Positions 10,281 to 55,555 of a stretch of 64,000 bases of DNA are shown here, piece by piece (position 1 is the stretch's first letter; every line of letters begins with the position of its first letter). Origin of the DNA: Heteronotia binoei (Eukaryota). Below the pieces are notes generated by a model. The model saw nothing but the letters and a program-made list of their open reading frames with translations, did not search any database and had not been told where the DNA came from. The position numbers and the translations under genes are program-made. Where the stretch lies: assembly GCF_032191835.1 (NCBI RefSeq), contig NC_083236.1, positions 70,990,001 through 71,054,000 of the forward strand, in the 5' to 3' direction.

Positions 10281-10819
10281 GATTTTGGTCCCTCTAGCCA
10301 AGGGCACGGAGACCATGGAGACTGTCTGGTCCTTGTTGTCGTCCTACCTGGCTTCTGGGCTTCCCTCCTTGTCCTCAAGTGTTTCTAATAAGCCCTGCTT
10401 GGATGCTGTGGCTCTGAGCCAGAAGCAGCCAGCTCTAGAGGTCATCCTTATCTGCAGAGGTTGGGTCCCTTCCTGCTTCCACTGTGCCCTGCTCCATGTT
10501 ATTTAAAAATGAGCTGCTCATGTAGCTAAAAGTACAGTTTGGAGAACGAACACAGTTTAAATTGAGCGGCCCCTTTGAGGCCAAGAAAGTTTTATTCAAG
10601 GTATAAACTTCTGTGTGCAAGCACCCTTCTTCCAGTTCCTTAGGTTTCAAGCATGGTTATTTCAAAGCATTAGAGAAAAGGTTTTGCTTTTCTTCCAAAG
10701 ATGCTTTTGGAACGTTCTTCTGTATGCGTTTAGTTGACAAGCACCTTCAATTGTTTCCAGGAAACATATTAGCATCACTGTGTTATAGGATTATTGTAAA
10801 AAAGAAGATACCTTCTTAG

Positions 10820-11120
10820 ACAATGAGTGGAATTCTGTGCCAGAGGAAATAGCGATGGCCACAGGAATAACCAGCTGTAAAAGGGATTAGACAGATGCTT
10901 GAAGGAGTGGTCTGTCAGTAGCTACTGGTGACTGAAGGGAACTTCCCTGTCCAGAGGCAGTAAACCTCTGAATCCCAGAGCCAAGAGGCAACATCAGGGG
11001 AAGACCTTGGCCTCTGTCCTTCTTCATTTGGCCCTCCAGGGCAACTGGTTGGCTGCTGTGTGAGACCGGATGTTGCACTACGTGGCTCATGGGTCTGACT
11101 CAGCCGGGGTCTTCTGATGT
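10820..11120 (+). mobile_element. Old CR1 3' fragment
   Basis: tgccagaggaaatagcgatggcc...aaaagggattagacag...ggtctgactcagc...cttctgatgtt. Confidence 0.55.
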
Positions 11121-11489
11121 TAATTAGCTCATTCCCCCAAGACCAGGCTGCAGGGATGCTGCTGCACGGGGTGCCAGTTTACGTTCCCCAGGACAGCCCC
11201 CCTAGAGAGGATTACAGTTGTCTGGTCCAGAAGTAACTGAAGTCTGGACTAGTGAGGCCAGATCAGCAGAATCCAGAAGGTGAGAGGGCTTTTGATCCGG
11301 AGGTGGTAGAAGGCACCCTTGCATTCTTTCTGCAGTGGAGTTGTCGGCAGCGTGTGCCAGGTCCCGGAAAAGGCCTTGGCGTGGATAGTTGGAGAAAGAG
11401 TCCTTAGATCCCCCTAAGGGTACCAGCTTTGGCGAGTAGGAGCTCTCAGCCCTGCCTTCTGCTGACCGCTCTCTTGGTGGGCCTTGCAG

Positions 11490-11687
11490 TTGGAGGACCA
11501 CATTGTGCGTCTGCGGGAGGAGCTGGACCGTGAGCGGGAGGAGCGCAACTACTTCCAGCTGGAGCGGGACAAGATCCACACCTTCTGGGAGATCACTCGA
11601 CGGCAGCTCGATGAGAAGAAGGCGGAGTTGCGCAACAAGGACCGGGAGATGGAGGAGGCCGAGGAGCGGCACCAAGTGGAGATCAAG
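11490..11687 (+). CDS. GAS8: GAS8 exon 3 ([28 protein letters not shown]...VEIK)
   Basis: 198 nt; ends at a non-canonical GC donor (AAG|gcaaga). Confidence 0.95.
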
Positions 11688-11807
11688 GCAAGATGCGGGG
11701 GGGGGGGGGGGGGGGAGGGAGGGGGCCTGATTCTGTGCTCTCTCTGCCTCTGCCCCGAGGAGGGGGCCTGCCTGGTTGTAGACGGTCGGCTGTTCCTCTC
11801 CCCCCAG

Positions 11808-12014
11808 GTTTACAAGCAGAAAGTGAAGCATCTGCTGTACGAGCACCAGAACAACCTGACTGAGTTGAAGGCCGAGGGCACGGTGGCCATGAAGCTGGCC
11901 CAGAAGGACCACCGGTCCCAGGAGATGGAGCTGCGCAAGGACATGCGCACCCTGAAGGTGGAGCTGAAGGAGCAGGAGCTCGCCAATGAGATGGTGGTCA
12001 AGAATCTGCGGCTG
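11808..12014 (+). CDS. GAS8: GAS8 exon 4 ([13 protein letters not shown]...KNLRL)
   Basis: 207 nt, AG/GT flanks. Confidence 0.97.
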
Positions 12015-12125
12015 GTACGTCTCAGGGGAGTCCGGCCCCTCTGGCGGCACCCGGGCCTCAGCCCTGGAAGAAGAGCCCTGCCCGTTGGCAAGGTCTGCCC
12101 CTGATGAGCCTCTTCTCCCTGGCAG

Positions 12126-12180
12126 AAACAACAAGAGGACATGACTGCTCTCCGCTCTGACTTTGAGAGACAAGTGAAAG
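12126..12180 (+). CDS. GAS8: GAS8 exon 5 (KQQEDMTALRSDFERQVK)
   Basis: 55 nt, AG/GT flanks, phase 1 end. Confidence 0.95.
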
Positions 12181-12218
12181 GTCAGTTCTGGGGTTTGCCG
12201 TCCATGTTCAATGAGGAG

Positions 12219-12495
12219 AGCCAGTGCTGCAGTGGTTAAGTGTGTGAACTCTTATTTTGGAGATCCAGGTTTGATTCCCCACTCCTCCACTTGCACCTGC
12301 TGGAATGGCCTTGGGTCAGTCATAGATATCACAGGAGTTGTCCTTGAAAGAGCAGCTTTTGGGAGAGCTCTGTCAGCCCCACCCACATCACAGGGTGTCT
12401 GTTGTGGGGGGGAGGAGATATAGGAGATTGTAAGCCGCTCTGAGTCTCTGATTCAGAGAGAAGGGCGGGGTATAAATCTGCAGTCATCGTCGTCA
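12219..12495 (+). mobile_element. tRNA-derived SINE with L2-like tail (family B)
   Basis: gccagt(t/g)..gtggttaagtgtg...gggtttgattcccc...gggcggggtataaat. Other copies at about 15494-15770, 20099-20378, 21141-21392, 34525-34770 and 63131-63615 (two) on plus, and 25340-25710 and 50650-50932 on minus. Confidence 0.85.
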
Positions 12496-13169
12496 AGGTG
12501 CTCTGAGGCCCTCTTGGCCACAGGCCGAGTAGCTTTGGAGCTGCTTCCCCACAGTTTAGCCCCTCTCCTCCATTTTGGGGAAGGGTGGGTATTTGTAACG
12601 AATAACCACGTTTGTAGCGAGTAACCAAGTGCCCGTAACCACATCTGTCCATTGCTGAAGGGGGTGTGTGTCTGTAGTTGCTGTCCTTTGATTGATAGCT
12701 TGGCTCTTTTGGTTTGCCATAGATTGTCAGTCTGGCTAGGGCCCTTCTTCAGTGGCACTCTGTGTCCTGTGTGCCTTGCAGTTCTCCAAAAGAATGGCCA
12801 AGGCATTACTCTTAAGTGCCAAAGATGTAAGCAAAGACTATTCCAAGATACTGGCAAGTTAAACTCCCTCTAGTAGTGGTGAATGCAGTAGGCACAAAAG
12901 CACTGCTTCTTTAAACACAGCGGGGGTCTTGTAGGATGCCCAGCTCCGCCAACCCTTCTCCCTTCCCTCAGACAGTTGTGTGCTTGTGCCGGGAGTGTCT
13001 TTGCACGCATCTGAGGCTTTCCTGTCAGCCCACCCCTCTCTGTGGGGCTAGGAGGCACCCTGCCCCACCTCCTCTTCCCCCACAGCCCCCTGGTAGAGAC
13101 AGGCATAGCCTCGGCCGCAGCCTTGCCAGCTGAGCCCTCAGTCAGGCCAGCCTGGCACTGCTCCTCCAG

Positions 13170-13375
13170 AGATCGAGGCCAAGTACGAGAAGAAGATGCG
13201 GGTGCTGCGCGATGAGCTCGACCTACGCAGGAAGACGGAGATCCACGAGATCGAGGAGAGGAAGAATGGGCAGATCAACACCCTGATGAAGAATCACGAG
13301 AAGGCCTTCAGCGACATCAAGAACTACTACAACGATGTCACCCTCAACAACCTGGCGCTCATCAACACCCTCAAG
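13170..13375 (+). CDS. GAS8: GAS8 exon 6 ([26 protein letters not shown]...NTLK)
   Basis: 206 nt, AG/GT flanks. Confidence 0.97.
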
Positions 13376-13671
13376 GTAAAGCATGCCCTCCCTGACCCCG
13401 CTACGGGCAAGTCTGGTCTGGCTGCTGGTCCTTTGGGACAGTCCTCCCCCGAGCCTCCCAGGTCCCGAGGGAAGGCCTTTTCCCTGCAGCCAGACTGCCA
13501 AGACTGGGATGCTGCCGTGTGTCATGAGTTCCATTGGGCTCTGGGGGAGAGACCTTTGCCCCGGGGAGTCTCAGCCTGGGTTGGAGGGAACTCAGCTGGG
13601 GTGGGTGTGAGGGGCTGGCCTCTAGGACCAGGGACATGCCTTGCCCTCTGTGTGTCTGCCCGGGAGTGCAG

Positions 13672-13839
13672 GAGCAGATGGAGGAGATGAAGAAGAAGGA
13701 GGACCACCTGGAGAAGGAGATGGCCGAGGTGCTGCTACAGAACAAGCGGCTGACAGAGCCGCTGCAGCGGGCCCGAGAAGAGGTGGCCGAGCTGCAGAAG
13801 AAGCTGGCCCACTACGAGAAGGACAAGATCTCTCTGGTG
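13672..13839 (+). CDS. GAS8: GAS8 exon 7 ([15 protein letters not shown]...DKISLV)
   Basis: 168 nt, gtgagt donor. Confidence 0.96.
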
Positions 13840-14577
13840 GTGAGTCCCGGGGCTCTGCAGTGCACTTCCCCACTTGCACTCTGCTGTACTCAGTAGTGCC
13901 CTCTGTGGGTGAGACTGGGGAAAACATTGGGCTAAGATACACTGAGCTTTGCCTGAGCTGGAGGCCACACCATGTAACCACTAACCGCTTGTATTGAACG
14001 TCCTGTCCTGTTCCGGTGGAGAGGCATTTCACTTTTGGGGCTTTTGGACAGACACGTTTGTACTGTGTCAAAGACAGCTAATCTCTGCTGTTGCCTGATA
14101 TCTCTTTTGTTGTTACTTACTTCATTTATACAACACTTTTTGTCAACATGGGAATCCAGAGTGGTTCAGAATATTCTCCTTTTCTCTGTTTTATTCTTGT
14201 AGCGATGCTTGACAAGGTCTTAGCCTGTGTTACCTGTTTGTTGGTCCTCCAGAGCAGCTGGCTGGCCACTGTGTGAAACAGATGTTGGCCTGGAGGAACC
14301 ACAGCTGCTTCCTGTGTCATGTTGTTCTGCTGAGATGTGCCACAGTTTTTGTCATGTTTGGAAAAAACCCAACAAAGTCCACCCCAGAACTCATAGAGCT
14401 GGTCTTTGCAGCTTGAGGTAGTTGAGTAACACCTGAGGACAAGTGGAGAGAAACTCTCCTCCAGATGCCTTCCCTTCCCCACTGCCTTGTGCTTCTCTTT
14501 CTCTTTTTTGCTGCTTGGTTTAGAGTAGAACAAACACCTCCCGACTTCTGTATTAACCTTTTCCTTTCCTCCCCCAG

Positions 14578-14664
14578 AGCACGCAGGCCCGCCTGAAAGT
14601 CGCCCAAAAGGAACTGAAGGATCTCCAGTGGGAACATGAAGTGCTGGAGCAAAGATTCAGCACG
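14578..14664 (+). CDS. GAS8: GAS8 exon 8 (STQARLKVAQKELKDLQWEHEVLEQRFST)
   Basis: 87 nt, strong polypyrimidine acceptor, gtgaga donor. Confidence 0.96.
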
Positions 14665-16380
14665 GTGAGACCTATTGGGGACTCCTGCTGTGTGTCTGAT
14701 TTGTGTCTTGCTGGGCAGGCGGGTGGGACAGAAGCGGTGGGCATGCTGGGCTGCTGTGCCAAGGGGAAGACCCAGGCCTGCTTCCTGAGCCCTCTGCCCC
14801 TCCCCCCTGCCCCCTGGCAGTGCTGGAACCCCAGGCGTTTCGTGCTGAGAACTGTGGCATTTCCCTTCATCTCCTGCTTTCGCTCTCTGTGTCCCTGGCT
14901 TTCCACAGGGAGGACCCACAATAAAGGTGGCGCCAAGTGTGTGGCTTGGTGCCTTCCGGGGGGTGGGATGTTGTCTTTTAGAATTCCCGGGAAAGCTTGG
15001 CCGGGCAACGACATGTCTTCCTCTGTTCAGTCTCCAGCAGCAGCTGCCCAAAGAGAGCAAGGGTGCCTGGGAGGGAGAGGGAGAGGGAAGGACTCTCCTG
15101 TTCTCCACTCAGCAGCCCGGCCTCCTGTGTTGTATGCAGGGGTTGCAGCTCAGTTCCTAGCAGGCCGGGGGACTTTCTCCCGCATGGGGCTCATCTGCAG
15201 TTGCGCAGTGATCGGGGACCTCGTTAGCAACTCGCCATTAAGATAACCAGCGGGTTGTAATGAGGGTGCCCTTGTGAGAAATGGGTCAGATTGCCCCTCC
15301 CCCGCAATGCTGCTTTGTCCCTGAATGCTGTTCTCTTGCTGGGTGCCCGTTGCCCCCTCCATTGTCTGATCGTAGAAATGTTTTCACCTAGCTTTTCTAC
15401 TACTCTGTAAATTCAAAGTAGCTCACAATTTGGAGCCAGTAACAAAAGTCGATAAGCGAGTCCCGGTCTTACTTCGCCGTCTTCAACGTTCCCCAGTTTG
15501 GTGTAGTGGTGAAGTGTGCGGACTCTTATCTGGGAGAACCGGGTTTGATTCCCCACTCCTCCACTTGCAGCTGCTGGAATGGCCTTGGGTCAGCCAGAGC
15601 TCTGGCAGAGTTGTCCTTGAAAGGGCAGCTTTTGTCAGAGCTCTCTCAGCCCCACCCACCTCACAGGGTGTCTCTTGTGGGGGGCGGGGAAGGTAAAGGA
15701 GATGGTGACCGCTCTGAGACTCTGATATTCAGAGTATAGGGTGGGATATAAATCCAATATCTTCTTCTTTCCTCTCCTTACTGGGCTTCAGCTGAGGACA
15801 AGGCATTGCTGGCCCCTATGGGAATATCCAGCAGATGTGGGGGGAGGTGTCTTTGCTGATGGATCCAGAAGCGTGAGGCCTGTGTTGGCTCCGTTCCTTT
15901 GCCGAACACCGCTTCCTTGGAGAAGATGCTCAGGAGAGGCAGGGGCCCAGAGCCTGCCAGGGAGCCTCCCTCCTGCCCTCCCCGTGGAAGAGACCCCCTC
16001 TGCAGCTGCCCTTCCTTTGGCCTCTGTGGCAAGCCCTTTTCATTTGGTGGAGGGGAAGGGAAGAGTTTGGCAGGAAAGGTTTTAACCTGTTTGCTCACTC
16101 TTCAAAATTGGCTTTCATTGGTGCTTTCATTCACCTGCCCAAAGCAGGGCTTTTTTTGTGAAAAAGCCCAGCAGGAACTCCTTTGCATGTTAGGCCACAC
16201 CCCCTGCTGCCAAGCCAGCCGGAACTGTGTTCCTGTGCATTCCTGCTTAGAAAAAGCCCCGGGCCAAAGTATTTGATGTGTGCGAGCAAAAGCGTATTGG
16301 CCAGCATCGGGGCTCTGGGACAAGACCTGTTGTGGAGCTCTTCTGAAGCGTGCGGCTGGTTGGGTGTCTCCCCGCTGCAG

Positions 16381-16590
16381 GTTCAGGCTGAGCGAGACGA
16401 GCTTTACCAGAAGTTCACCAAAGCCATTAACGAGGTGCAGCAGAAAACGGGCTTCAAGAACCTGCTGCTGGAGCGGAAGCTGCAGGGCCTCTCCAACATC
16501 CTGGAGAAGAAGGAGGTGCAGCTGAACGAGGTGCTGGCGGCCTCCAACCTGGACCCCAGCGCTCTGACCGTGGTCACCCGGAAGCTGGAG
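16381..16590 (+). CDS. GAS8: GAS8 exon 9 ([22 protein letters not shown]...TRKLE)
   Basis: 210 nt, AG/GT flanks. Confidence 0.97.
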
Positions 16591-18123
16591 GTACTGCCTG
16601 CCCCCTTGGGGAAAAACTGTTGGGGTGCGGAGGGGCGGCTTTGGGTGGGGTCCGTGGACAGCCTGACAGGTGCAGTCGCAGCGCGTCAGCTCAACCTTCT
16701 GGCAAAGGAAGTGGGGAGGGTGTCTCTTACATTGTATTTTGGGGAGCTGTGGACAGAAGTCGCTTGGGGAGGAAGCGGGAGGAGCAAGACTGGACTCGCA
16801 CACCAGGCCGGCACCAGCTTCTGCATGCTCAGGGCAGGCCTCTTAAGCCTCTCGTCCTTTGAGCTCCCGCTGGAGCACGGTTGTAGTCCAGAGGCATGAG
16901 GTTGTGTTCAGCATCCCACTGAAGGGCTGGAGAGAGGCACGGGGAGAGAGGACAGCGGGAGGAGTGGCAGAGTTTCCCAGAGTGGGCTTTTTGCTCGTGA
17001 CCAGACGGAGCGAGATCCAGGAGCAGATTTCCACAGCAAATGGCAGCTCCAGGGCTGCAATGTCGGGGAGGGAGGAGTTGCCCCCCCTCCCCCTTTCAAG
17101 CTTGCGGAGGGAGGCAGGGATACTGCTGAACTGTCCCTCTCCCTTTGTGAGCTAAACAGTGGCCTGAGCCTGATGTTGGGAAAATGACATGAGGGAGGAA
17201 GGGTTCAGTCCCTTTCCCCTGCATTGTGGCCCCGATACACAGGGCGTACACCCGCCTCGTACCATTCCCTCGCATTGAAAGCCATGCAGAAGATCCAGCA
17301 GCTCTTTGCATTCTTTGTGTGGTGTGAACGTCCCTCACGGGATGTGGACTGTGCAGCATCTTGGCCTTCTGGCTAGGCTGCAGGGTGGGGGGCTGAGGAG
17401 GAGGGAGCCTTCCGAGTGCCTTTCCCTTCCCTCGGATTTGTACCATCTTCAGAAATATAGTGCTGGGTTGTTCAGGGGTCTTTAGCAGGAATCACACACG
17501 GCCTCCCCCCCTGCATGCCAGCGAGGCATGAGTGGGCCAAGTGCCGTCCCTGCTGTGGGCTCCAGGGTGGGGCTGCCCAGCTGGAAGGAGGGAGAGCCTC
17601 ACGCTGCCCTGATCAGGCTGACACCTTCTGGGGCTCTCAGTCTTCTAGATGCCCTCAGGACTCAGCCCAGCTTCATCTCGCCCTCTTCCACTCTATTGGG
17701 ATCCAACAGTCACCAGCTGCCCCTGCTCTCTCTTTTTTTGGCCACTCAGCCTCTTGGGACGTCTCAGGCCCAGAAGGGCTACTCACCCTTTCAGAATGCT
17801 CCTCTTGCCGCTTTGCCGGAGAGCTGGCTCAGTAGAATATCCCCCCCTCCCCACACACACCCCCATCGCACTGCCAGCCCTCAGATCCAAGGGCCAGGGA
17901 ATGCCGGGGACACCCCAGACTCCTTTCCAGGGCAGCCTCTGCAGAGGAGACGTCTGCCTGGGGAAGGGACTGAGCAGCGTCCACATTCCAGGCTCTGGCA
18001 GGCGCCAGTAATTGGAGAAGCATCTCCGCAGATTTCCTTCCCGTGGCTTGGTGCCTCCTTGCACCAGCTGCTTCCCCCACCCCCCAAAAAGCGCTGCACT
18101 CAACTGCTATTTGTACAGCAGGC

Positions 18124-19197: not shown

Positions 19198-20758
19198 GTG
19201 AGGGAGGGGCTCACGGAGAGACCTGCATCAGGGTCTTGGGAGAGGCAGGGAAAGGGACCCTTTAGATCCAGACGCTTGGCCTTGGGTCCTTTGCTAAAGA
19301 GCCTCTGGAACAGTCGGAAGAAGCACTTCCTTTTAATTTTGCTAAAGCTTTGGGTCACAACCGATCCCGGTGGCTGGCCAAGATGAGAGGCCTCCTCTCC
19401 TTTTTCGGCTGTTAATAATTTGAGAGCGAAGTTTCTCCCTTTCCTTCCCTGGGCCGCTTAGAAACTTACCTCCCTGAATTCCGTCCGCCCTTTGGTTCAT
19501 TTTTTTTAAACCTAGTCAGCCTTTGCTGGTCTTGGCATTTCCTCCAAACGTAGTCCGGGTCATCTCATTTGCCCTTTTCCTTCTCTTTGGAGACATTTTG
19601 GGAATGGGAAGTCATCATTACACAGGCTAGCCTGGAGAGTCCTCTGCGCGTAGAGGCATCATGAACACAGACACATGCAGAGGAAGACCTGTACAACCTT
19701 GCGTGAGAGAGGAAGCCCCGTCTCTCCCCCTCTCCCCACTGGCCCCTTTTCCTCCCTGCTTCTTTTCCCTGGAGCCAACAGGGCCAGTCACTGGAGGGGG
19801 CTGCAGTCGAAAGTGCAGACTGCTTGTAGAGGAGCCAGCTGATGGAGGCAGGGGAGGCGTAGGCAAGACTGCCAGGCAGGCCTTTTGCTCCAAGCCCAGG
19901 CACACCCACACCCACACCCCAGCCTACAGTAGCTGGGGGAAGGAGGCGGAGTGGAAAGGCCACCCTCTGCTCTAAGCTTCTCTCACAGGCCCCTGCTTCA
20001 TCTGGCTGCCAGCAGCATCTCCTCCTCCCATCTTCAGCGGAGCCAGTTTATAATAATAATAATAAATTTTTAATTTATATCCCACCCTTCCCACCAAAGC
20101 AGTTTGGTGTAGTGGTTAAGTGTGTGGACTTTTAGCTGGGAGAACCGGGTTTGATTCCCCACTCCTCCACTTGCACCTGCTGGAATGGCCTTGGGTCAGC
20201 CATAGCTATCACAGGAGTTGTCCTTGAAAGGGCAGCTGCTGTAAGAGCTCTCTCAGCCCCACCTACCTCACAGAGTGTCTGTTGTGGGGGAGGAAGGGAA
20301 AGGAGATTTTAGGCTACTCTGAGACTGTGATTCAGAGAGAAAGGCAGGGGCTAAATCAGCAGTCTTCTTCTTCTTCTTGCTGCGACCCCTCGTAGAGCTT
20401 CCACAGCCATCCCCTCCCCATCCTGCCACTTATAATGTTGACTGTGGTCTCACTCGATATTTTTTAGCTGCAGGGCCTACACAAGCAGAGATGTCGCTTC
20501 TCCAGTTTGTTTCTAATTAACTTTTGGGTTCATCTGCAAACCCGTGGGTTCCCGCAGGTTTATAAAAGGGGAAACCACCCCCCCATCAGTATCTAGTCCC
20601 CTTGTGTGGATTCTTTGATCTGCATTCTGAAGTGATCCAGAGCAGAATGAGGCAAAAGGAAATCTACACGTAGCAGATGATGGTTGCTGACGTTGTTCTT
20701 TGCCTCAGTGCTTCCCTCAACTGCAGCCTCCTGTTCTCTCCCCCACCCCCTCTTGCAG

Positions 20759-20908
20759 GCGCACAACGACCTCTTGCGGACCTACGAGGCCAAGCTGACA
20801 GCTTTTGGGATCCCCTTGGACAATCTGGGCTTCAAGCCACTGGAGACCTCCGTGGTGGGCCACATTCTGGGCCAAGGCCCTGCTGGACTTGTCTCGACCC
20901 CCACCTAG
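20759..20908 (+). CDS. GAS8: GAS8 exon 11 ([13 protein letters not shown]...GLVSTPT-stop)
   Basis: 150 nt to TAG. Exons sum to 1461 nt (486 aa) with no frame break. Confidence 0.96.
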
Positions 20909-21045: not shown

Positions 21046-21535
21046 TAGACCCTGCAAGGGTGGTTTGTACACTGGCTCTGCAAAGGCAGCCTTTTTCACC
21101 CTCTGCCTCCCCCTTCTAGTTCCAGAGTGCTTGGAAAAAGCCAGTTTGGTGTAGCAGTGAAGTGTGTGGACTCTTATCTGGGAGAACCGGGTGTGATTCC
21201 CCACTCCCCCATTTGCAACTGCTGGAATGGCCTTGGGTCAGCCAGAGCTCTCCTTGAAAGGGCAGCTGCTGTGAGAGCTCTCTCAGCCCCACCCGCCTCA
21301 CAGGGTGTCTGTTGTGGGGGAGGAAGGGAAAGGAGATTGTGAGCCACTCTGAGATTCGGAGTGGAGGGTGGGATATAAATCCAGTATCTTCTTGGAAGAC
21401 TGGGCATGGTCCTGAGGCAGCAGCCATGGGCCCCTCATCCCCTCGCCCCCAGCATGGTTTGCATGTGTGAGAGGCCAGGCATCACCCAGAAGCCTTAATG
21501 TTTGCTCTTGCAATGACTCTTTGAGGGGGAAGCCT

Positions 21536-21541
21536 TTTATT
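21536..21541 (-). terminator. Candidate URAH polyadenylation signal AATAAA
   Basis: tttatt on plus strand, about 40 nt past the URAH stop. Confidence 0.55.
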
Positions 21542-21580
21542 ATCACCCTTGGGCCTGCCGCTCCTCTGGCCTCTCTTCTG

Positions 21581-21670
21581 CTAGTTCCCCCGGTAAGTGG
21601 TGTAGGAGTAGGGGCTGAACAGCAGGGGGATGTGGACCTTCCGTTCTGCTTCTGTCACTGTGAAGACGAC
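21581..21670 (-). CDS. URAH: 5-hydroxyisourate hydrolase, last exon (VVFTVTEAERKVHIPLLFSPYSYTTYRGN-stop)
   Basis: tttcag acceptor; HIPLLxSPYSYTTYRG signature of the HIUase/transthyretin-related family. Confidence 0.93.
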   Translation of the reverse strand, partial: VVFTVTEAERKVHIPLLFSPYSYTTYRGN

Positions 21671-22062
21671 CTGAAACAGACAAGGGGGGCGGGTTCCTGA
21701 GCTCCTGGGCTGCCAGCTCCCATTGGCCTCCTCGTCGACTGCCTGCAGGATAGACTTGGCCGTGTGCCCAGAGCACCACTGGAACCACCCAAGGGCCCTG
21801 ATGTCTCCAGATGCCATTGCGGGTAATTGCCCTCCTAGCCCCCCCCATACACGCCTTTTATGATGGAACTTCAGTGCCTGCACATGTGCCCCTTGTGGGG
21901 ACAGCCCCTCGCAGCAGGCAGAGCACAGGAGGGGGTGAGGCCCTTCGGGGGGGGGACCCACAGGATTCTGGGCCTCCTTCACACCTTCCAGCCCTTCTCC
22001 CCAAGGGGCCTGCAACCCTCTCTCGACACCACCCCCCTGCTTGCCCAGTGCAGGAGACTTAC

Positions 22063-22201
22063 TTCCACATAGGGGTAGAAGCTGGGGTGGCCCTGCTCCT
22101 CCCAGTAAGCGCTCGTTTCAAAGCGCAGCTTGTAGGTGCCCGGCTCCAGCCTCTTGGGTATCACGCTGCTGTAGTCTAGGCGCCCGCTGGCGTTCGTAGT
22201 G
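22063..22201 (-). CDS. URAH: URAH penultimate exon (TTNASGRL...PGTYKLRFETSAYW...SFYPYVE)
   Basis: 139 nt, ttccag acceptor, gtaagt donor; GxYKLxFxTxxYW and FYPYVE motifs. Confidence 0.93.
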
Positions 22202-22279
22202 CTGGAATGGAAACAAGCGTTGGAGGCACCTGCAACCACCCTGCCCACTTAGAGGGGGGCTTCCGCTGCCACCACCTAC

Positions 22280-22422
22280 TTTTTACTCATCCGGGCCCAC
22301 GGCCCATGAGGATCCTCCAGCTGGGCGAGGTGCACGGCCAGGCCGCTTGCAGGGAGGCCAGTGAGGACGTTCAGCGCGTGGACCGTCAGCGCAGGGTGGG
22401 GAGCCCCATCCGGGCCAGCAGC
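22280..22422 (-). CDS. URAH: URAH exon 2 (AAGPDGAPHPALTVHALNVLTGLPASGLAVHL...WARMSK); start codon unresolved
   Basis: cttcccag acceptor, gtaggt donor, phase 2 end matching the next exon; LTxHxLNxxxGxPA motif with catalytic His. The ATG at 22409 is out of frame by one base. Confidence 0.85.
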
Positions 22423-22832
22423 CTGGGAAGCAGAGCGAGATAGAGGCCCCCAGCTGTGGTGTGTCCAGCAGAGGATGCCCCAGTCGGCCCACTCAGAAAC
22501 CTCCTTGGAGCTTTAGTGCCAAAGCTGCCCCCGCCCCCAGCAGCCTGGGCTGGTTGTTTTATTGCTCTGGCTGTGGGGTAGACGGGGCAGCAGCAGAGGC
22601 AGCTCCTTCTTGCCCAGAGCAGAGGATGTTGTCACCCTGCGTCAATCTGCCTTGGACTCAAGATGGGTGGCCACAGTGGTCTGTCTGCTGCAGCAGAAAA
22701 GAGCCAGAATCCAGAAGCACCTTCAAGCCTAACTCAACTTCTGGCAGGGGAGGAGTCACTGCTCACTTCTTCAGCTCCTTCTCTGCCACGAATGTTGTTA
22801 GTCCTGAAGGTCCTTCTTGTACCTTCTCCACT

Positions 22833-23030
22833 GCCTTCTAATGAATCAGACCTGCCTTGGCCCATCATGCTGCAGCTCTCCAGGGTCTCAGGCAGAGAAA
22901 GGCCTTTCACATCACCTGCTGCCTGGTCCTTCGAACTGGAGATGCTGCCGGGGATTGCATAAGAACATGAGCCTGGGTCCTTCTGCATGCCAAGCAGATG
23001 CTCTCCCACTGAGCCACCGCCCCTCCCTGT
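22833..23030 (-). mobile_element. Diverged family A SINE upstream of URAH exon 2
   Basis: ctgccttctaatgaatcagacc...cagatgctctcccactgagccacc. Confidence 0.75.
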
Positions 23031-23415
23031 CCTGGCTCTAGTCCAGAACTTTGGAGATGCGTGCTAGCACCAGTGGCTTTTGAGAGGGGATTGGCAGCAA
23101 AGGCTGCCCAACCTAGAAGGATTTTGGCTTCATGATGGAAGGCAGGGTGGAGGGCTGTGAGCAGCCTGCCCAGCTGCCTGCCGTTAGTTCTTCTCTGGCG
23201 GAGTTCTCTGCCTGGCGCAGGCCTGGCACATGGAGGGTGGGGCTGTCCCTGCTGCTGGCTTCCATCCCACCCACCCCCCTGCCTCCAGTCTCACATGGTC
23301 CAGGGGTTGCACTCCATCCCTTTGCTGGTTTCCCTGCTCCATTTCTCTTGGGACTAGGAGGGTGTTCCTGATCCCGCCCCCCTTGGCATCATTTCCTGAG
23401 AGTGCAAGGGCAGCA

Positions 23416-23426
23416 GTGACTCAGCA
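23416..23426. promoter_or_regulatory. ARE/MARE consensus GTGACTCAGCA upstream of URAH
   Basis: Exact RTGACnnnGC match with an AP-1 core, next to a GTTAAT HNF1-type half-site; function untested. Confidence 0.3.
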
Positions 23427-23507
23427 CAGAGCATTAACCCTGTAGCTGCTGCAGAGGTGCCTGCCTGCTGGAAATGGGGAGAGGGGGCAACATCTTCTGG
23501 TGGGCCA

Positions 23508-23950
23508 TAAGAACATAAGAGAAGCCATGCTGGATCAGGCCAACGGCCCATCAAGTCCAACACTCTGTGTCACACAGTGGCAAAAATTTTTATATACACA
23601 CATACACTGTGGCTAATAGCCACTGATGGACCTGTGCTCCATATTTTTATCTAAACCCCTCTTGAAGGTGGCTATGCTTGTGGCCGCCACCACCTCCTGT
23701 GGCAGTGAATTCCACATGTTAATCACCCTTTGGGTGAAGAAGTACTTCCTTTTATCCGTTTTAACCTTTCTGCTCAGCAATTTCATCGAATGCCCACGAG
23801 TTCTTGTATTGTGAGAAAGGGAGAAAAGTACCTCTTTCTCTACTTTCTCCATCCCATGCATTATCTTGTAAACCTCTATCATGTCACCCCGCAGTCGACG
23901 TTTCTCCAAGCTAAAGAGCCCCAAGCCTTTTAACCGTTCTTCATAGGGAA
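23508..23950 (-). mobile_element. CR1 LINE 3' fragment
   Basis: Minus ORF YEERLKGLGLFSLEKRRLRGDMIEVYKI...; (cataagaa)n tail. Confidence 0.9.
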
Positions 23951-24774
23951 AAGGCCAGCCATTTCCCCCTGAAAGAAATGCAGCATGCATACCTCCCCCC
24001 ACCCCCAGCACTGGAAGAGGTGGGAAATATTCTGGGGGTGGAGAGTATCAGTGGGGAACTGAGGCCACATCATAAGAGTGGGGTTGGGGTGAGAAGGAAG
24101 AGGTTGAACGGGGCAGGGGGCATTTGCATGATGGGCTCCTTAAGAGAAGCCTGCTGCTCAAACTTTCCCACGTTGCGGGAAGGTCGAGTGAGGGAGGCAT
24201 GTTTGCACAGTGGGCTCCTCAAGAGGAGCCCGTTGTGCAAACAGGGCCTGCAATTTGGGCAGGTGCTCGTGGCCCTCCCCCACTGGGGGGCCAGAGGTGG
24301 GGCCTTGCCGGGGGCAGCAAAAGCCCCAGCGCTGGCCCTGCCAGTGGCGTCATCATGACTGAGAAAACGGCACGCTGGCATTATTGTTGCGGCTGCTGCT
24401 GTTAATCACCCTATCCCAGCTTGTGCAGGGCTCTGGGTGATGTACAACAAAAGGCATAGAGCCATAAAACAAATGTACAAAACATGAAGATTCCTTCAGC
24501 TTTCGTTGCCTTGTTGATCATGGGGTGGGGGGGTTGCCCCAAGGACTCCTGTGGGGTTGGTGTAGCTTTGTGTCCAAAGTGTTCATCATGGTCTAGAGGC
24601 CAGCCAGGCTGGAGTCCCAAATTCTCCAGCTGCACCACCAGTGAGCTTTGATTTCCATGGGCCAGTCCTCAAGGAGTGCGGGGGGAGCTCCGGGTCTCTT
24701 CCTGGCACAGCCCACCCTTCTGCCTGGCCTGGACCTGCAAAGAGAAGAGTGGGGCTTGCCCTGCCTGCCTGTAC

Positions 24775-24918
24775 CTGCACCAGTGGCTTGGGGAAGGGGC
24801 CCTTCTCATTCTCTGGGCAATTGATGGGGGGAATGGCCCAGTCCCTCTTCTGCCTCCTCAGCCCAGTGCCGGACTCTGGGGAGGCCGCTGCTTCTGCCCC
24901 CAGGGATGGGAAGGAGAC
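24775..24918 (-). other. Isolated E-cadherin-type exon 4 ([48 protein letters not shown]); gene remnant or exon of an unannotated transcript
   Basis: ctctttcccttgcag acceptor, 144 nt open frame, gtacag donor, phase 0-0. RRQKR furin site and DWxIPPI EC1 start. No partner cadherin exons found on this strand. Confidence 0.9.
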
Positions 24919-25059
24919 CTGCAAGGGAAAGAGGTTAGGAGGCCTTTTGTGACCCAGCCCCAGGGATCCTTTGGGCCCCGATCTCTTCTTGCACGTTTTC
25001 AGATTGTAACGGAGGAGGAGAAGGAGATTGCATTTATACCCTGCCCTTTGCTCAGAACA

Positions 25060-25335
25060 GCCCCGTGGCGCAGAGTGGTAAAGCTGCAGTGCTGCAGTCT
25101 GAACTCTCTGCTCACGACCTGAGTTCGATTCCAGCGGAAGGTGGATTCAGGTAGGCTCAAGGTTGACTCAGCCTGTGGTAAAATGAGTCCCCAGCTTGCT
25201 GGGGGCAAAGTGTAGATGACTGGGGAAGGCAAGGGCAAACCACCCCATAAAAAGCCTGACGTGAGAACGTTGTGAAAGCAACGTCACCCCAGAGTTGAAA
25301 ACGACTGGTGCTTGCACAGGGGACCTTTCCTTTCC
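25060..25335 (+). mobile_element. Sauria-type SINE (also about 26085-26362 and 39530-39835)
   Basis: gccccgtggcgcagagtggtaaagctgcag head and ACCTTT-type tail. Confidence 0.8.
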
Positions 25336-25709
25336 TATGCTCAGAGCAGCATACAATCACCTTTCCCTTCCCCTCCCCACCACAGACACCCTGTGAAGTA
25401 GGTGGGACTTATTTATTTATTACTTTAAATTTCTATTCTGCCCTCTCTGCAAGCGGACTCAGGGCGGCTAACAATCAATTCAAGCATCTATAATTATATA
25501 CAATTTAAAACCAATAAATACAGTTAAAATATTTTATGGTGCTGTACATATGGCTAAGAGAACTCTGACAGAACTGCTCTTGAGAGAACAGCTCTGAGAG
25601 AACTGGGATGAGCCCAAGGTCACCCAGGGGCTGCACATGGAGGAGGCAGTGGGGAATCAAACCTGGCTCTCCCAGGTGAGAGTCTGCCTCTGCTATCCAC
25701 TACACCAAA

Positions 25710-26570
25710 CGGGCTCTCTTTGCTGACCCTTGCTGACTCAGCTAAAAGCCTCGGGATCGTCCTGATTCCAGCTTTATTATTGGAGAAGAAACTTAAAACA
25801 GTTGCAGAAAAGGTCTTCTTTCCACTCAGCCCAGCCTGTAAGATGACCCTTGACCTGGATACAGCTGATCTGGCCACCTGGATTCACGCAACAGTAACCT
25901 CGAGACTAGACTACTGCAATGCACTCTACCTGGGTCTCCCCACAAAATCAGCTTGGAAACTCCAGCTGGCCCAGAATGCTGCAGCTCAGCTGTTAACAGG
26001 AGCTACATGGAACATCCTACAGATGTTCCATTGGGTGATCATCTGTTACTGGGCTCAGGTTTAAGTTGTTATCATATATAAAAAGAGCACAGAGTGGGAA
26101 AGCTGCAGTACTGCAGTCGGAGCCTTCTGCTCACGACCTGAGTTTGATCCCGTCGGAAGCTGGGTTCAGGTACCTGGCTCAGGGTTGACTCAGCCTTCCA
26201 TCCTTCTGAGGTCGGTCAAATGAGTCCCCAGCTTGCTGGGGGGAAAGCGTAGATGACTGGGGAAGGCAATAGCAAACCACCCCATTAAAAGTCTGTTGTG
26301 AAAGCAACGTCACTCCAGAGTTGGAAATGACTGGTGCTTGTACAGGGAACTACCTTTACCTTTTATCATATATAAAGCCTTTCACAGCCTTGCCCCCCCC
26401 CCCTTTTTGTGGGATTGCCTCCTGCTGTGTTCCACTGTGACAACATTGCTCAAGTTAGCAGGGGCTCTTGCAGCTGCCAACCTGCCAGTGGGCAAAATCA
26501 CCATAGCCCCTCTGCGTGTTTTCTCTGCTGGGGCTCCCAGCTTGCAGAACGGCCTGCCAAAGCAGCTCAG
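25710..26570 (+). mobile_element. L2-type LINE 3' fragment, interrupted by a Sauria SINE and a solo LTR
   Basis: ORF LATWIHATVTSRLDYCNALYLGLP...LQLAQNAAAQLLTG. Confidence 0.75.
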
Positions 26571-26816
26571 TGTCATGAGCCCTGACAAGGAGGAGCTGGA
26601 AGGGTTAACAGACCTGGAAGAGTTGCCAGCCAGTTCCTCAGCTGAACAAACAGCAGCTGGCCCATCAATCACTCTCCAGGCACCAGTGTCGGCTTTTGAC
26701 AATCAATCTCCTCCAACCTCTCCTTCTCCCACCTCAAGAGTCCGAAGCAGGCTCCGGAAAGAACTTTCAGAGTGAAGACATGAGGCACACCGATGCTTCA
26801 GATCTCTCAGCCCTGA

Positions 26817-29800: not shown

Positions 29801-31442
29801 CAAGCTGAAGCGAGGCAAAGAGGAAGCCCCCCCCCCCGCAAACGCAGCGCTTGGCGAAGCGCTGGGTTTGCGCAGGTGGGGGGCTTCCTCTGTCCCTGTC
29901 TGCGTGGCTTCAGCTTGTGCTGATAGCAAGGGCTGGGTTAGGAGGCAGCCAAGCCTCGGATCCCAGCCCTAGCTATCAGCTCAAGCTGAAGCCAGGCAAA
30001 GAGGAAGCCCCCCCCTCGCAAATGCAGCGCTTGGCAAAGCGCTGGGTTTGCAGGGGGGCCTTCCTCTGTCCCTGTATGCGTGGCTTCAGCTTGTGCTGAT
30101 AGCAAGGGCTGGGTTCGGAGGCAGCCAAGCCTCGGATCCCAGCCCTAGCTATCAGCACAAGCTAAAGCCAGGCAAAGAGGAAGCCCCCCCCCCCCGCAAA
30201 CGCAGCGCTTGGCGAAACGCTGGGTTTGGGCAGGGGGGGCTTCCTCTGTCCCTGTCTGCATGGCTTCAGCTTGTGCTGATAGCAAGGGCTGCGTTCGGAG
30301 GCAGCCATGCCTCAGTTTCCAGCCCTTGCTATCAGCTCAAGCTGAAGCCAGGCAAAGAGGAAGCCCCCCCCCCTCTGCAAACGCAGCGCTTGGCGAAGCG
30401 CTGGGTTTGCGGAGCGGGGGGGCTTCCTCTGTGCCTGTCTGCCAGGCTTCAGCTGCTGCTTCTAGCAAGGGCTGGGATCGGAGGCAGGATTGAGAGGGGG
30501 AAGGTGCCCAGATCTGGGTGCACAGCTTCAAAAAATTTTTTCCTGTTTTCCTCCTCTAAAAACTAGATGCGTCTTATGGTCCGGTGCGTCTAATGGTCCG
30601 AAAAATACGGGTATATAAATTATTATTGAAATGGTCTACAGAAGAAGAAGTAGTAAAATCTCAAATGATTAAATGGGCAATTAATTTAAATAAGGAAATA
30701 CAAATGGATACATGGGAATATCTTTGGAAGAACTCGATGAAAATATCAACATGTCAGAATATTAAAGAGAATTGTTTTAAGATGATGTATAGGTAGTATA
30801 TGACTCTGAAAAAACTGGCAAAGTTGAGTAAAAAGATGTCGGATAGATGTTGGAAATGTAAAAATCATGAGGGTTCTTTTTTCATATGTGGTGGACTTGT
30901 GAAAAAGCGAAAAAGTTTTGGCAGATGATACAACAAGAAATTTCTAAAATGTTGGGATACGACTTTAAGAAAGTTGCAGAGACTTTTCTGCTAGGATTAC
31001 AAATGGAAAAATTTCCAAAAGAAGATAGGACTTTAATTTGGTATTTGCTCTCAGCTGCTAGGACATTGTATGCGCAGTTGTGGAAGCAAGAAAAAATACC
31101 AGAGAAATGGGACTGGATCATGAAAGTTTTATCGTGGAGTGAGATGGACAAGTTAACAAGAACTTTGGACGTGTTTAAAAAGGAGTGGAAGAAATTCAGA
31201 AGATATATAGAACAAGAGTGGAATGTAAAAAGATACTGGACAATTTTTTAATATGATTGTGAGAAAAGAATGACATTGAATTTTGATTGGTTAGGGGTAC
31301 CTTTATAATCGAACTTAAGTATAAAACCTCGGCGGAAGTCTAGTAATGGAGGGAGGGGGGGCTGAAAATATCATATGGGTTAGAGATAGTAAGGATATCA
31401 TTAAACGTTGTAACCATATGTTATTAATAAAACTGTTTAAAA
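26817..31442 (+). mobile_element. 5'-truncated L1-type LINE (APE endonuclease, RT remnants, Cys-rich C-terminus), decayed
   Basis: ORFs with MGDFNG and TFFSARHNSFSRID, KAPGPDGF and YLG; 19-bp TSD TCAGATCTCTCAGCCCTGA at 26798-26816 and 31443-31461. Confidence 0.92.
29371..30610. mobile_element. Non-autonomous DNA transposon (Tc1/mariner-pogo-like) with internal palindromic tandem array, inserted in the L1
   Basis: 27-bp TIRs CCGTATTTTTTGCACCATAAGACGCAC / GTGCGTCTAATGGTCCGAAAAATACGG; (G)TA on both flanks; L1 frame KIISKV|YKLLLKW restored on removal. Confidence 0.88.
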
Positions 31443-33825: not shown

Positions 33826-34500
33826 GAGCCAGTTTGGTGTAATGGTTAAATGCACGGACTCTTACCTGGGAGAACCGGATTTGATTCCCCACTCCTCCAC
33901 TTGCACCTGCTGGAATGGCCTTGGGTCAGCCAGAGCTCTCTTATCTGGGAGAACCGGGTCTGATTCCCCACTCCTCCACTTGCAGCTGCTGGAATGGCCT
34001 TGGGTCAGCCAGAGCTCTCTTATCTGGGAGAACCAGGTGTGATTCCCCACTCCTCCACTTGCAGCTGCTGGAATGGTCTTGGGTCAGCCAGAGCTCTCTT
34101 ATCTGGGAGAACCGGGTTTGATTCCCCACTCCTCCACTTGCAGCTGCTGGAATGGTCTTGGGTCAGCCAGAGCTCTCTTATCTGGGAGAACCAGGTGTGA
34201 TTCCCCACTCCTCCACTTGCAGCTGCTGGAATGGCCTTGGGTCAGCCAGAGCTCTCTTATCTGGGAGAACCGGGTTGGATTCTCCACTCCTCCACTTGCA
34301 GCTGCTGGAATGGCCTTGGGTCAGCAGAGCTCTCTTATCTGGGAGAACTGGGTTTGATTCCCCACTCCTCCACTTGCAGCTGCTGGAATGGTCTTGGGTC
34401 AGCCAGAGCTCTCTTATCTGGGAGAACCAGGTGTGATTCCCCACTCCTCCACTTGCACCTCCTGAAATGGCCTTGGGTCAGCCATAACCCTCACATTGTC
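33826..34500 (+). repeat. Family B SINE with about 8 tandem copies of an internal 79-bp unit
   Basis: ctcttatctgggagaacc...ggtcagccagagct recurs every 79 nt. Confidence 0.93.
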
Positions 34501-36374
34501 CTTGAAAGGGCAGCTTCTGTGAGAGCCAGTTTGGTATAGTGGTTAAGTGTGCGGACTCTTATCTGGGAGAACCGGGTTTGATTCCCCGCTCCTCCACTTG
34601 CACCTCCTGGAATGGCCTTGGGTCAACCATAGCTCTCATAGGAGTTGTCCTTGAAAGGGCAGCTACTGTAAGAGCTCTCTCAGCCCCACCCACCTCACAG
34701 GGTGTCTGTTGCGGGGGGAGGTAAAGGAGATTGTGACCACTCTGAGATTCAAAGTATAGGGCAGGATATAAATCCAAATCCAATGACGTTTCTGGTTTGG
34801 CACCATGGCAGAGGACACTGTTCCAACAACCCCAACCACACTGACATCACTGATCCATGTACCACCACCCCCTCCTTTGCTGAAAGGTTCCCCAGACACC
34901 GAGCCTTTCTTGGGGGACAGGGGAAGATCCTACCTGAGTGACCAGACAGGAGAGCAGGAGGCTGGCTCCACAGAGAGTCCTCATCCTGGCCTGGATTTCA
35001 ACCCTCTGTGCCCTTCTGGCCAAGGGCGGGTAGCCCAGAGAGCCCTGCTGGCTGCCAGAGCAAAGTTTGTCTTATAGACCCATGTGGGGGAGGGCCCTGT
35101 TTCGACAGCCCTTGGAAGCCGGCCAGCAAGGGCGGGGCGGGCTGTTGCACCACCAGCTCTGTGGGCATGATCACCAGGGCCCTCTTTCTCAAGGCTTCAG
35201 CTGCTATTTCTGCAGGGCAGAGCTTCACCTGAGCGTGACAACTCACCAGAATCAGGCATGGGCTCCAGGCCAGGTGTTCTTTAACACGGAAAGATGGACA
35301 TTTCCTGCAGCAAGGTGGAAGCTGGTTCGCCTCTCGCCGCTGCTCTCGTCCCACGGCAAGAGCTACCGTGGCAGACATTGCCTGGCAGTGCCCGCTTCCC
35401 ATGGCTTTGGGAAGGAAGGTGGGCAGGGCTTTTTTTGTAGCAGGAACTCCTTTGCATATTAGGCCACACCTTCCTGATGTAGCCAATCCTCCGAGAGCTT
35501 ACAGGGCCTACTGTAAGACTGGCTACATCAGGGAAGTGTGGCCTAATATGCAAAGGAGTTCCTGTTACAAGAAAAGCACTGAAGGTGGGCCTCAGCATCT
35601 CTCTGGGGTGAAGCTCCCCAGTGGAAAGGGCTCTGAGGGTGGCTTCCTCATGGTTCAGCTGTGGGACTGGCCTGTGGAGGCCCCCCAATCCCAAGGGTGC
35701 GCCCATCTGTAGGGAGTCCAGATGACTGGCACCAATGATGGTGGGGCCATGCCTTCTCTCCATCTTTTTGCCTGCCTCGTTTTTCTCTAAGGAGTGCAGG
35801 GTAACATACAGCACTCTTCTTTCTTTGGTTTCTACTGGGGTTTGTCCAGTTATGAGTGTCCCCTTGACTCTCTTGTGGGCCACACAGATGCCTTTTGGTG
35901 CACGCAGGTCCCAGGTCCGGTCTTGGGCTTCTGACTATCAAAAGGTCTCTTTCTTCTTTCTTTGCCTGGGAGAACTGCTGTCTACTGCAGCCAGCAGCAC
36001 TGAGCTCAAAAGGACAAGGGTCTGATGCGGCAGGAGGTGGCCACAGACGTCCTCGAGAAAAACCTACAGCTGTGCTCTTCTGCTTTTCGCTTGGACCCTG
36101 GGAGGGGACTTCCCACTGCCCATTTGAAGATTGCAACAGTTATTGGCCGGCTCAGACATATCCCACTTCCTCAGGTATGGAAAGAAATCCAACTGAGAAC
36201 CTGATTTACTGGGGAAGGGATGCAATCATGGAGCTGGAAGGGACCTCCGAGGTGATCTAGTCCAACCCCTTGCATGATGCAGGAAACTCACAAGTACCTC
36301 CCCCTGCCCTCCTTCTCATGACCTGCCTCAGTTCACAGAATCAGCATTGCTGTCAAATGGCCCTCCAGCCAGAC

Positions 36375-49921: not shown

Positions 49922-50133
49922 TTCAGTTTGAAGACTGCACGGGATGGAAGCTGGCACGCTACAGCACCGAGGACGCCAACTTCAGGGTGCTGGCGGATGG
50001 CACAGTCCTGGTGAGGCACCGCACGCAGCTGCGTGGAGAGGCGAGGACTTTCGTGGTGCAGGCCTGGGATTCCACCGGCACCAAATCCTCAGCCGTGGTG
50101 ACCGTGCGGAACAAAGGCCGTCATTCTCCACAG
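49922..50133 (+). CDS. CDH3: CDH3 exon 3, prodomain (QFEDCTG...FVVQAWDS...HSPQ)
   Basis: 212 nt, phases 1 to 0; FEDC, DG and AWD prodomain motifs. Confidence 0.92.
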
Positions 50134-51964: not shown

Positions 51965-52111
51965 GAGGAGTCTGGTCCTGCCAACCAAGTGGAGGTGCAA
52001 AGGTTTCCAGGGCCCAGGTCTGGCCTGAAGCGGCAGAAGAGGGATTGGGTGATTCCACCCATCAAAGTCCCTGAAAACGAGAGGGGCCCCTTCCCCAAGA
52101 AGCTGGTCCAG
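51965..52111 (+). CDS. CDH3: CDH3 exon 4 (...GLKRQKR|[23 protein letters not shown])
   Basis: 147 nt; furin site; [15 protein letters not shown] matches recalled chicken B-cadherin better than E-cadherin. Confidence 0.93.

Positions 52112-55552: not shown

Positions 55553-55555
<3 letters not shown>

Follow-up and report, generated by a model that had tools for sequence, protein, structure and literature searches.

A signal-peptide exon ahead of the hydroxyisourate hydrolase exons of the gecko Heteronotia binoei: a probable remnant of an old cadherin-URAH fusion

Transthyretin (TTR) is the textbook case of an enzyme, 5-hydroxyisourate hydrolase (HIUase), that was turned into a secreted carrier after gaining a signal peptide, and the gecko Heteronotia binoei is expected to have a TTR of its own. 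Here we describe the HIUase gene URAH of this species together with an exon of cadherin type that lies upstream of it. Both are on the minus strand of a 64,000-nt stretch of contig NC_083236.1 (assembly GCF_032191835.1, positions 70,990,001 to 71,054,000), which we call the window and in whose coordinates all positions below are given.

Metazoan HIUases are listed as peroxisomal by virtue of PTS2 signals (review PMC4324301). Tetrapods are described as having a single HIUase gene, the second coelacanth HIUase (HIUase B) being a coelacanth-specific duplicate (Biscotti et al., PMC4764851). Uricotelic birds and reptiles lack liver uricase and yet express Urah highly in the liver, in a report that mentions no cadherin part (Mori et al., 10.1101/2023.06.02.543418). 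Our literature search found no paper that links HIUase and cadherin; the combined architecture is visible in databases.

Our main conclusion, to which we assign a probability of roughly 0.75, is that the gecko URAH gene has the 144-nt cadherin-type exon as its exon 2, an eroded remnant of a sarcopterygian cadherin-URAH fusion, and that an exon encoding a signal peptide is spliced ahead of the HIUase exons.

A chimeric URAH mRNA in two RNA data sets

The cadherin-type exon (Table 1) encodes 48 residues that begin VSFPS and comprise the end of a cadherin prodomain, an RQKR furin site and the first 23 residues of the first extracellular cadherin domain (EC1). Against the PDB (phmmer) this piece matches EP-cadherin at E=1.3e-11 and E-cadherin at ~1e-8, a sequence similarity to cadherin that is far beyond chance. 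It resembles exon 4 of CDH1 (E-cadherin) in its length of 144 nt, in being in phase 0 at both ends, and in carrying the prodomain end, RQKR and the motif DW.IPP.....EN..GPFPK.LVQ. It differs from CDH1 exon 4 in that its strand is devoid of flanking prodomain, EC, transmembrane and cytoplasmic exons, HIUase exons being joined to it instead. Out of the hallmarks of a classical type-I cadherin (prodomain, five EC domains, transmembrane segment and catenin-binding tail), the minus strand keeps the 48-residue piece only.

When 1.8 billion proteins were searched with these 48 residues, a 100% identical match was found in a 223-aa protein, XP_060109855.1 'transthyretin-like [Heteronotia binoei]'. The cadherin-to-URAH chimera makes up residues 53-223, and the 24775>22422 join is thus already part of a RefSeq model. 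Residues 112-222 of this protein cover the Pfam profile PF00576 from 1 to 109 of 109 (E=1.4e-32, 113 bits against a cut-off of 25.3), and the three HIUase exons together reach 117.3 bits with the NCBIfam hydroxyisourate-hydrolase equivalog TIGR02962 (cut-off 87.45). The best solved relatives are the reconstructed HIUase-TTR ancestor (100 bits) and zebrafish HIUase (93 bits), with transthyretins at ~53-61 bits. The catalytic His, Arg and His are kept: TVHALN, SGR and KVHIPLL align with the corresponding zebrafish HIUase residues. With its catalytic set retained and its closer likeness to HIUase, this part of the protein does not qualify as a transthyretin proper, and the RefSeq name is an automatic one. 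It also holds two N-glycosylation sequons, NTT and NAS, which may be read as weak and circumstantial support for secretion.

Four RNA runs that contain URAH exons were placed on positions 21300-25400; X1 and X2 are the contig sets of two studies, while X9 and X10 are raw reads which, at 0-4 reads per URAH exon, are uninformative on the cadherin-URAH junction. The joint 21668>22061 is found in X1 and X2 contigs and in X9 and X10 raw reads, and the joint 22201>22280 in both contig sets. At the upstream side of the first HIUase exon, acceptor 22422 is joined in the RNA to position 24862, at a depth of 677 in X1 and of 46 in X2, in the latter with 55 letters on that side. Rescaled to its 57 exonic nt, the depth of bin 24862-24998 is ~1490 in X1 and ~48 in X2, equal to that of the URAH exons: the first 57 nt of the cadherin-type exon are constitutive in the URAH mRNA of both data sets.

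Further upstream, 28 unplaced letters of one X1 contig that precede 24918 are an exact match to minus-strand positions 34937-34964, with 0 chance matches expected. They fall on an exon whose 17 codons, MRTLCGASLLLSCLVTQ, reach 2.17 in their best 10-residue Kyte-Doolittle window and read as a typical signal peptide. This exon 1 is orthologous to MRTLFGTSLLVVFLAPQ, the first exon of the Paroedura picta model, and to exon 1 of Eublepharis, which has the same CAG|gtagg donor. In good agreement with this, window positions 35327-34863, which comprise the promoter and exon 1 region, align with positions 9709-10135 of the Eublepharis locus (L001) at 67% identity over 476 nt (blastn). Two independent RNA data sets thus show a chimeric mRNA that runs from exon 1 through 24918-24862 to 22422 and onward.

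The sequence-only reading that preceded this work had proposed a cadherin-URAH chimeric transcript with the 144-nt exon ending in phase 0 at 24775 and the URAH acceptor at 22422 also in phase 0, the join being open to the terminal YRGN. Translation by script confirms the phases and the open frame. As for the transcript, it is real in the RNA contigs of both studies at acceptor 22422, with the difference that the junction seen is 24862>22422 and not 24775>22422. That reading had found no signal-peptide exon upstream; one exists at 34984-34934, linked by RNA and orthologous in the two other geckos, and the proposed rerouting of the enzyme to the secretory pathway has gained accordingly at the RNA level, the routing of the protein itself being predicted from sequence. 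Three possible obstacles named there have lost their force. An extra base near 22398-22407, that is, an assembly frameshift in the first HIUase exon, does not appear in the RNA, where the X2 contig piece over 22280-22422 has 0 gaps and no indel. URAH 5' ends between 22423 and 24770 are not apparent either, RNA depth in that interval being negligible. An AATAAA at 22558-22563, suggested as a transcript end ahead of 22422, is rejected since it lies in the spliced-out intron, at a depth of ~8 as against ~1500 in the exons.

Joined in silico, exon 1, the 144-nt exon and the segments 22422-22280, 22201-22063 and 21670-21581 can be read without a stop for 188 aa, up to a terminal YRGN. All splice forms are open, at 188 aa with 144 nt kept, 159 aa with 57 nt kept and 140 aa with the exon skipped; the 159-aa frame consists of the 17-aa signal peptide, 19 linker residues and the HIUase domain. 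No in-frame ATG lies within the first HIUase exon, and the reading frame, followed upstream from 22422 to the nearest stop codon, offers no Met either. The ATG at 22408-22406 is out of frame and meets a stop after 7 codons. On these grounds we rejected a short URAH isoform of the kind found in Anolis, Sceloporus and Euleptes, with its start immediately ahead of 22422. Nothing credible came out of a regular-expression search for a PTS2-like peptide (R[LIVQ]x5[HQ][LAIVF] after a Met) on the minus-strand sequence ahead of 22422. Since the HIUase exons are without a start codon of their own, translation must begin at the ATG of the cadherin-derived exon 1.

One X2 contig of 493 nt is cyclic, with a 463-nt cycle and a 30-nt self-overlap, and is made up of pieces 21545-21668, 22061-22201, 22280-22422 and 24862-24916. 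In it a cryptic donor in the 3' untranslated region (UTR; AGG|gtgata after 21547) is joined back to acceptor 24918, both sites being canonical. This contig could represent a circular RNA of the 57-nt exon and the three HIUase exons, or read-through splicing between tandem copies of the gene in the animal sampled.

Table 1. Features of the URAH locus and its surroundings in the window
Feature	Position	Strand	Details
Exon 1, coding part	34934-34984	minus	ATG 34984-34982; 17 codons, MRTLCGASLLLSCLVTQ; ATG AGG ACT ... GTC ACT CAG|gtagga; predicted cadherin-type signal peptide
Cadherin-type exon	24918-24775	minus	144 nt; acceptor ...cccttgcag, donor CAG|gtacag; no stop in frame
First 57 nt of cadherin-type exon	24862-24918	minus	19 residues; acceptor ...cccttgcag|GTC; present in URAH mRNA of the RNA runs
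Last 87 nt of cadherin-type exon	24775-24861	minus	29 residues, LRRQKRDW...LVQ; furin site and EC1 start; in RefSeq model, intronic in the RNA runs; donor CAG|gtacaggcaggca
First HIUase exon ('URAH exon 2' in the sequence-only reading)	22280-22422	minus	acceptor ...cttcccag, phase 0; reads AAGPDGAPHPALTVHALN...
Second HIUase exon	22063-22201	minus	joints 22201>22280 and 21668>22061 (cut +2), CT..AC ends
Last coding exon	21581-21670	minus	VVFTVTEAERKVHIPLLFSPYSYTTYRGN; stop TAG 21583-21581, then 3' UTR with AATAAA 21541-21536
Deletion scar	23457-24734	minus	1.28 kb, including CR1-like insertion ~23613-24011; Eublepharis counterpart 4.65 kb with four EC1-EC2 exons
First coding exon of RefSeq model	35247-35402	minus	MGSGHCQ...CLIL, first 52 residues, placed by tblastn of XP_060109855.1; donor CTG|gtgagt
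TATAAG box	35071-35076	minus	~90 nt upstream of exon 1 ATG; putative promoter element
GAS8-like last coding exon	20684-20908	+	open reading frame; tail-to-tail neighbour, synteny anchor

A cadherin-HIUase gene family and its shortening in Heteronotia

The 48-residue search also matched seven other proteins in which an exon-4-like stretch is combined with a C-terminal HIUase (from turtles, a lizard, a snake and birds). Further searches returned dozens of models with Pfam cadherin and HIUase matches in Paroedura, Eublepharis, two Gekko species, many other squamates, turtles and birds, and also in platypus, carnivores (fox and meerkat), newt, frogs and both coelacanths; one coelacanth entry (Latimeria menadoensis) is labelled '5-hydroxyisourate hydrolase B' in GenBank. 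The parts common to the aligned fusion proteins are the signal peptide, VLTFPESG.GLRRQKR|DW (with W2), EC1-EC2 with calcium-binding motifs, a short linker and the HIUase catalytic residues. Judged from this distribution, the fusion looks as old as the sarcopterygians, and therian URAH may be a truncated descendant of the fusion gene. Dozens of 'cadherin-1-like' entries in RefSeq are in fact URAH genes. Nor is the Heteronotia exon an orphan or a new and independent route, as the sequence-only reading had suggested, an orthologous fusion gene being spread across sarcopterygians.

The Eublepharis gene has nine coding exons of 66/144/156/145/176/111/125/139/90 nt with every splice site canonical, and the HIUase exons are its sole 3' end. 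The run of 144/156/145/176 nt equals the sizes of human CDH1 exons 4-7. The gene lies head-to-head with a divergent full-length cadherin and tail-to-tail with GAS8. The same neighbourhood is found in the window, with + strand cadherin exons at 49921-62712 and the GAS8-like last exon; positions 20907-20735 are 90% identical to Eublepharis L001 22441-22611, where the gene has a PF13851 GAS match.

Heteronotia shares with the fusion models (variously named 'cadherin-1-like', 'B-cadherin-like' or 'hydroxyisourate hydrolase') the orthologous exon 1, the 144-nt exon, the phase-0 HIUase acceptor and the neighbours, with the signal-peptide exon and the exon-4-like exon in frame upstream of the HIUase exons. 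It differs from them in having lost the four EC1-EC2 exons and in that the mRNA of the RNA runs uses 57 nt only, with no cadherin domain and no furin site. The scar left by this loss is anchored by blastn on both sides (window 24933-24734 to L001 14333-14534, and window 23457-23276 to L001 19182-19366). The lost exons add up to 156+145+176+111 = 588 nt, which keeps the frame. No EC1 or EC2 remnants were found by tblastn on the minus strand of the window, and XP_060109855.1 has no PF00028 match. The Heteronotia gene, without the two EC domains, is a shortened derivative and not a full member of the family.

Several observations on the wider family stand apart from this comparison. Amphibian and coelacanth forms retain the cadherin prodomain (PF08758). 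Two cadherin-HIUase genes stand in tandem on one strand in Gekko japonicus (10001-14512 and 23070-24512 of locus L002) and likewise in G. kuhli (10001-16690 and 21205-26690 of locus L003), the Heteronotia window has one, and Elgaria and Sceloporus have two different URAH proteins each. In several fish and other proteins the RQKRDW...LVQ stretch is repeated two to four times, e.g. in a Hoplias 'cadherin-2-like' protein of 972 aa and an Epinephelus 'protocadherin Fat 4-like' protein, which could reflect either cadherin fragments in tandem or gene models that were merged. Within the window, intron 1 contains a tandem array (33827-34720, minus strand) of at least nine copies of ~78-84-nt units that resemble an element recurring in Eublepharis L001 at 15632-15795, 19875-20037 and 30513-30669.

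Donor use at 24861 and competing explanations

The sequence-only reading had placed a furin-cleavable leader in the transcript. In these RNA runs we found no URAH transcript that covers 24861-24775, the RQKR-DW part; that stretch is represented by unspliced RNA and paralogue reads only, and the furin site is therefore not in their mRNA. In X1, the depth of 65.0 in bin 24725-24861 is made up of an unspliced contig (17.4) and a depth-75 contig that spans 87 of the 137 bases, which leaves no remainder for URAH mRNA. The depth-75 contig and all raw reads in this stretch carry four changes (24814, 24817, 24823 and 24836), which turn DWAIPP into DWVIPP and are otherwise synonymous, and one contig with DWVIPP-type letters departs from the window inside the exon at 24866. 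From their sequence, we take the cross-mapping reads over 24775-24866 to come from true CDH1 mRNA. The + strand cadherin exon at 51974-52117 was considered as their source and rejected, being ~82% alike by column identity as against ~92% for the reads, with DWVIPP.

Positions 24775-24866 are ~92% identical in DNA to these paralogue reads (92 nt), and the region is only ~77% identical to its Eublepharis orthologue over ~200 nt including intron flanks; for the full 144 nt of the exon, the likeness to the + strand cadherin exon nearby is ~82%. The identity pattern hints at gene conversion from CDH1.

A number of points weigh against our conclusion. The window reads GGG|ctgagg at 24862/24861, with C at 24861 and hence no GT, so that the observed joint is CT..AG in window letters. 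The RNA runs come from animals other than the reference one: C, G, G (+ strand) stand in all four at 22322, 22351 and 22360, where the window has T, A, A, and the X1 intron is ~95-97% alike to the window. G probably stands at 24861 in the RNA-run animals, a base that is placed from the ends of two contigs rather than read directly. The end of the unspliced X1 contig lies exactly at 24890, and a k of 31 is confirmed by the 30-nt self-overlap of the cyclic X2 contig. Because merging paths end 29 bases past the first shared base, the first shared base is 24861; since it is shared with the first base of the first HIUase exon (G), the runs would have G at 24861 and with it a strong donor, GGG|GTGAGG. 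In the table of differences from RNA, the row expected for 24861 would be diluted by the contig with CDH1-type letters and may be one of 188 rows beyond those displayed. Furthermore, exon 1 owes its RNA support to 28 letters of one contig, and the first exon differs between the RefSeq model (35402-35247) and the RNA. The HIUase ends in YRGN instead of the canonical YRGS, its exons have a pairwise dN/dS of 0.71 against Eublepharis, and 11 non-synonymous changes against 3 synonymous ones are private to Heteronotia when two Gekko species and Eublepharis serve as the comparison, a near-neutral ratio that comes from small counts and an orthology made uncertain by the two tandem Gekko copies. The gene may accordingly be under weak constraint or decaying. 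Lastly, secretion, cleavage and enzyme activity of the product are predictions from sequence.

The mismatch at 22322, 22351 and 22360 is a matter in its own right: either the reference animal belongs to another lineage than every RNA sample, or these are reference-specific variants. Likewise, the RefSeq first exon is not seen in the RNA contigs, in which the stretch 34964-34934 is the sole upstream exon. Its 52-residue peptide has no relatives, and 260 nt separate it from the signal-peptide exon that the RNA shows downstream. Probably the 5' end of the RefSeq model is wrong, or this is a minor alternative exon.

The strongest competitor holds that the reference animal splices the whole 144-nt exon (24775>22422) and thereby makes a URAH protein with a furin-cleavable cadherin leader, RQKR|DWAIPP...LVQ. 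The C at 24861, an ancestral base shared with Eublepharis (it belongs to the Leu codon CTG in GLRRQKR), deprives the window of the internal GT donor, while the ancestral donor CAG|gtacaggcaggca at 24775 is kept in the same letters as the functional donor of Eublepharis. The resulting join is in frame and equals the RefSeq model, and the 29 codons concerned differ from the alignment consensus at ~3 positions (V>A, R>K and K>P), fewer than in Paroedura or Eublepharis. Yet no URAH-expressing RNA run has the 24775>22422 joint or URAH-level depth over 24775-24861, the donor at 24775 is weak, with A instead of G at +5, and the RefSeq model, whose first exon is not that in the RNA, may be partly ab initio. 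The conservation of the 29 codons may itself stem from CDH1 gene conversion, given the ~92% likeness of the paralogue reads. We consider this explanation unlikely, though deserving of attention. In our own reading, too, the reference allele, if it lacks the internal donor, would fall back on the conserved 24775 donor (188 aa, RQKR|DW kept) or else skip the exon (140 aa). Donor choice would then be lineage-dependent within the H. binoei complex, with a single C/G difference at 24861 deciding whether the furin-cleavable peptide is included.

It is a good deal less probable that the cadherin-type exon is a dead relic in a gene becoming a pseudogene, the reference allele skipping or mis-splicing the exon and the URAH product having little or no function. 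The loss of the EC1-EC2 exons, the missing start codon and PTS2 exon, the 11:3 ratio on the Heteronotia branch, the YRGN terminus and the absence from the window of the internal donor used in other animals would all fit such decay. However, every splice form keeps an open frame, the catalytic His, Arg and His are retained with TIGR02962 above its cut-off, exon 1 and its donor are intact, and related animals have abundant URAH mRNA with correct splicing. YRGN, moreover, is common to Paroedura, Eublepharis, Gekko, Euleptes, Anolis, Candoia and Elgaria, with Sphaerodactylus the sole exception among the geckos listed. That the chimeric joints are mere products of de Bruijn assembly or cross-mapping, with no real chimeric RNA behind them, is very improbable. 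X1 and X2 are indeed contigs and not reads, one X2 contig is cyclic, and paralogue reads, taken as CDH1, do cross-map onto 24775-24866; but two studies yield the identical joint, which coincides exactly with the canonical acceptor 22422 and with a codon boundary, the 57-nt piece has the depth of the URAH exons, and the loose upstream end lands precisely in an exon that has an ATG, a signal peptide and a GT donor and is the orthologue of exon 1 in other geckos.

Comparison with transthyretin and canonical HIUases

We therefore retain the reading of the locus as an eroded cadherin-URAH fusion and propose the following history. In the ancestral gene, a cadherin-1-like 5' module (signal peptide, exon-4-like exon with RQKR, and EC1-EC2) would have been spliced to three HIUase exons through the phase-0 acceptor. 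An in-frame genomic deletion would then have removed the four EC1-EC2 exons in Heteronotia and left the signal-peptide, exon-4-like and HIUase exons. Transcription would start near 35045, giving an mRNA of exon 1, 57 or 144 nt of the exon-4-like exon and the three HIUase exons; translation from 34984 would follow, with the signal peptide leading the protein into the endoplasmic reticulum. From the 159-aa form a free HIUase close to TTR in size would result; in the 188-aa form, furin could in addition cut after RQKR. On the strength of its sequence, the product is most likely a secreted, transthyretin-sized HIUase.

A wider view, which we advance tentatively and at somewhat less than even odds, is that from coelacanth to bird this gene encodes a secreted fusion of two E-cadherin domains with an active tetrameric HIUase, that Heteronotia has reduced it to signal peptide plus HIUase in a second, natural and independent secretory rerouting of the kind that gave rise to TTR, and that the one base at 24861 determines whether an adhesion-arm peptide cleavable by furin is made.

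The locus shows how a HIUase can gain a secretory leader by a route different from that of TTR, the capture of cadherin exons, and in Heteronotia this leader is all that remains of the cadherin part. As no start codon is supplied by the HIUase exons, the gene would have no product other than the secretory form. An extracellular HIUase could possibly clear 5-hydroxyisourate formed non-enzymatically from plasma urate, a speculative function that would bear on the puzzle of Urah expression in liver.

With canonical vertebrate URAH/HIUase (zebrafish 2H1X, mouse) the gecko gene shares the three HIUase exons, the fold, the His/Arg/His set and the C-terminal YRG; unlike these, it has no start codon or PTS2-like peptide of its own upstream of the HIUase exons, and its C-terminal Ser is replaced by Asn. 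With TTR it would share the HIUase fold, an N-terminal signal peptide to the secretory pathway and a similar mature size. It differs from TTR in that it scores as a HIUase with the catalytic residues retained, and in that its signal comes from a captured cadherin exon, whereas that of TTR comes from the duplicate's own first exon.

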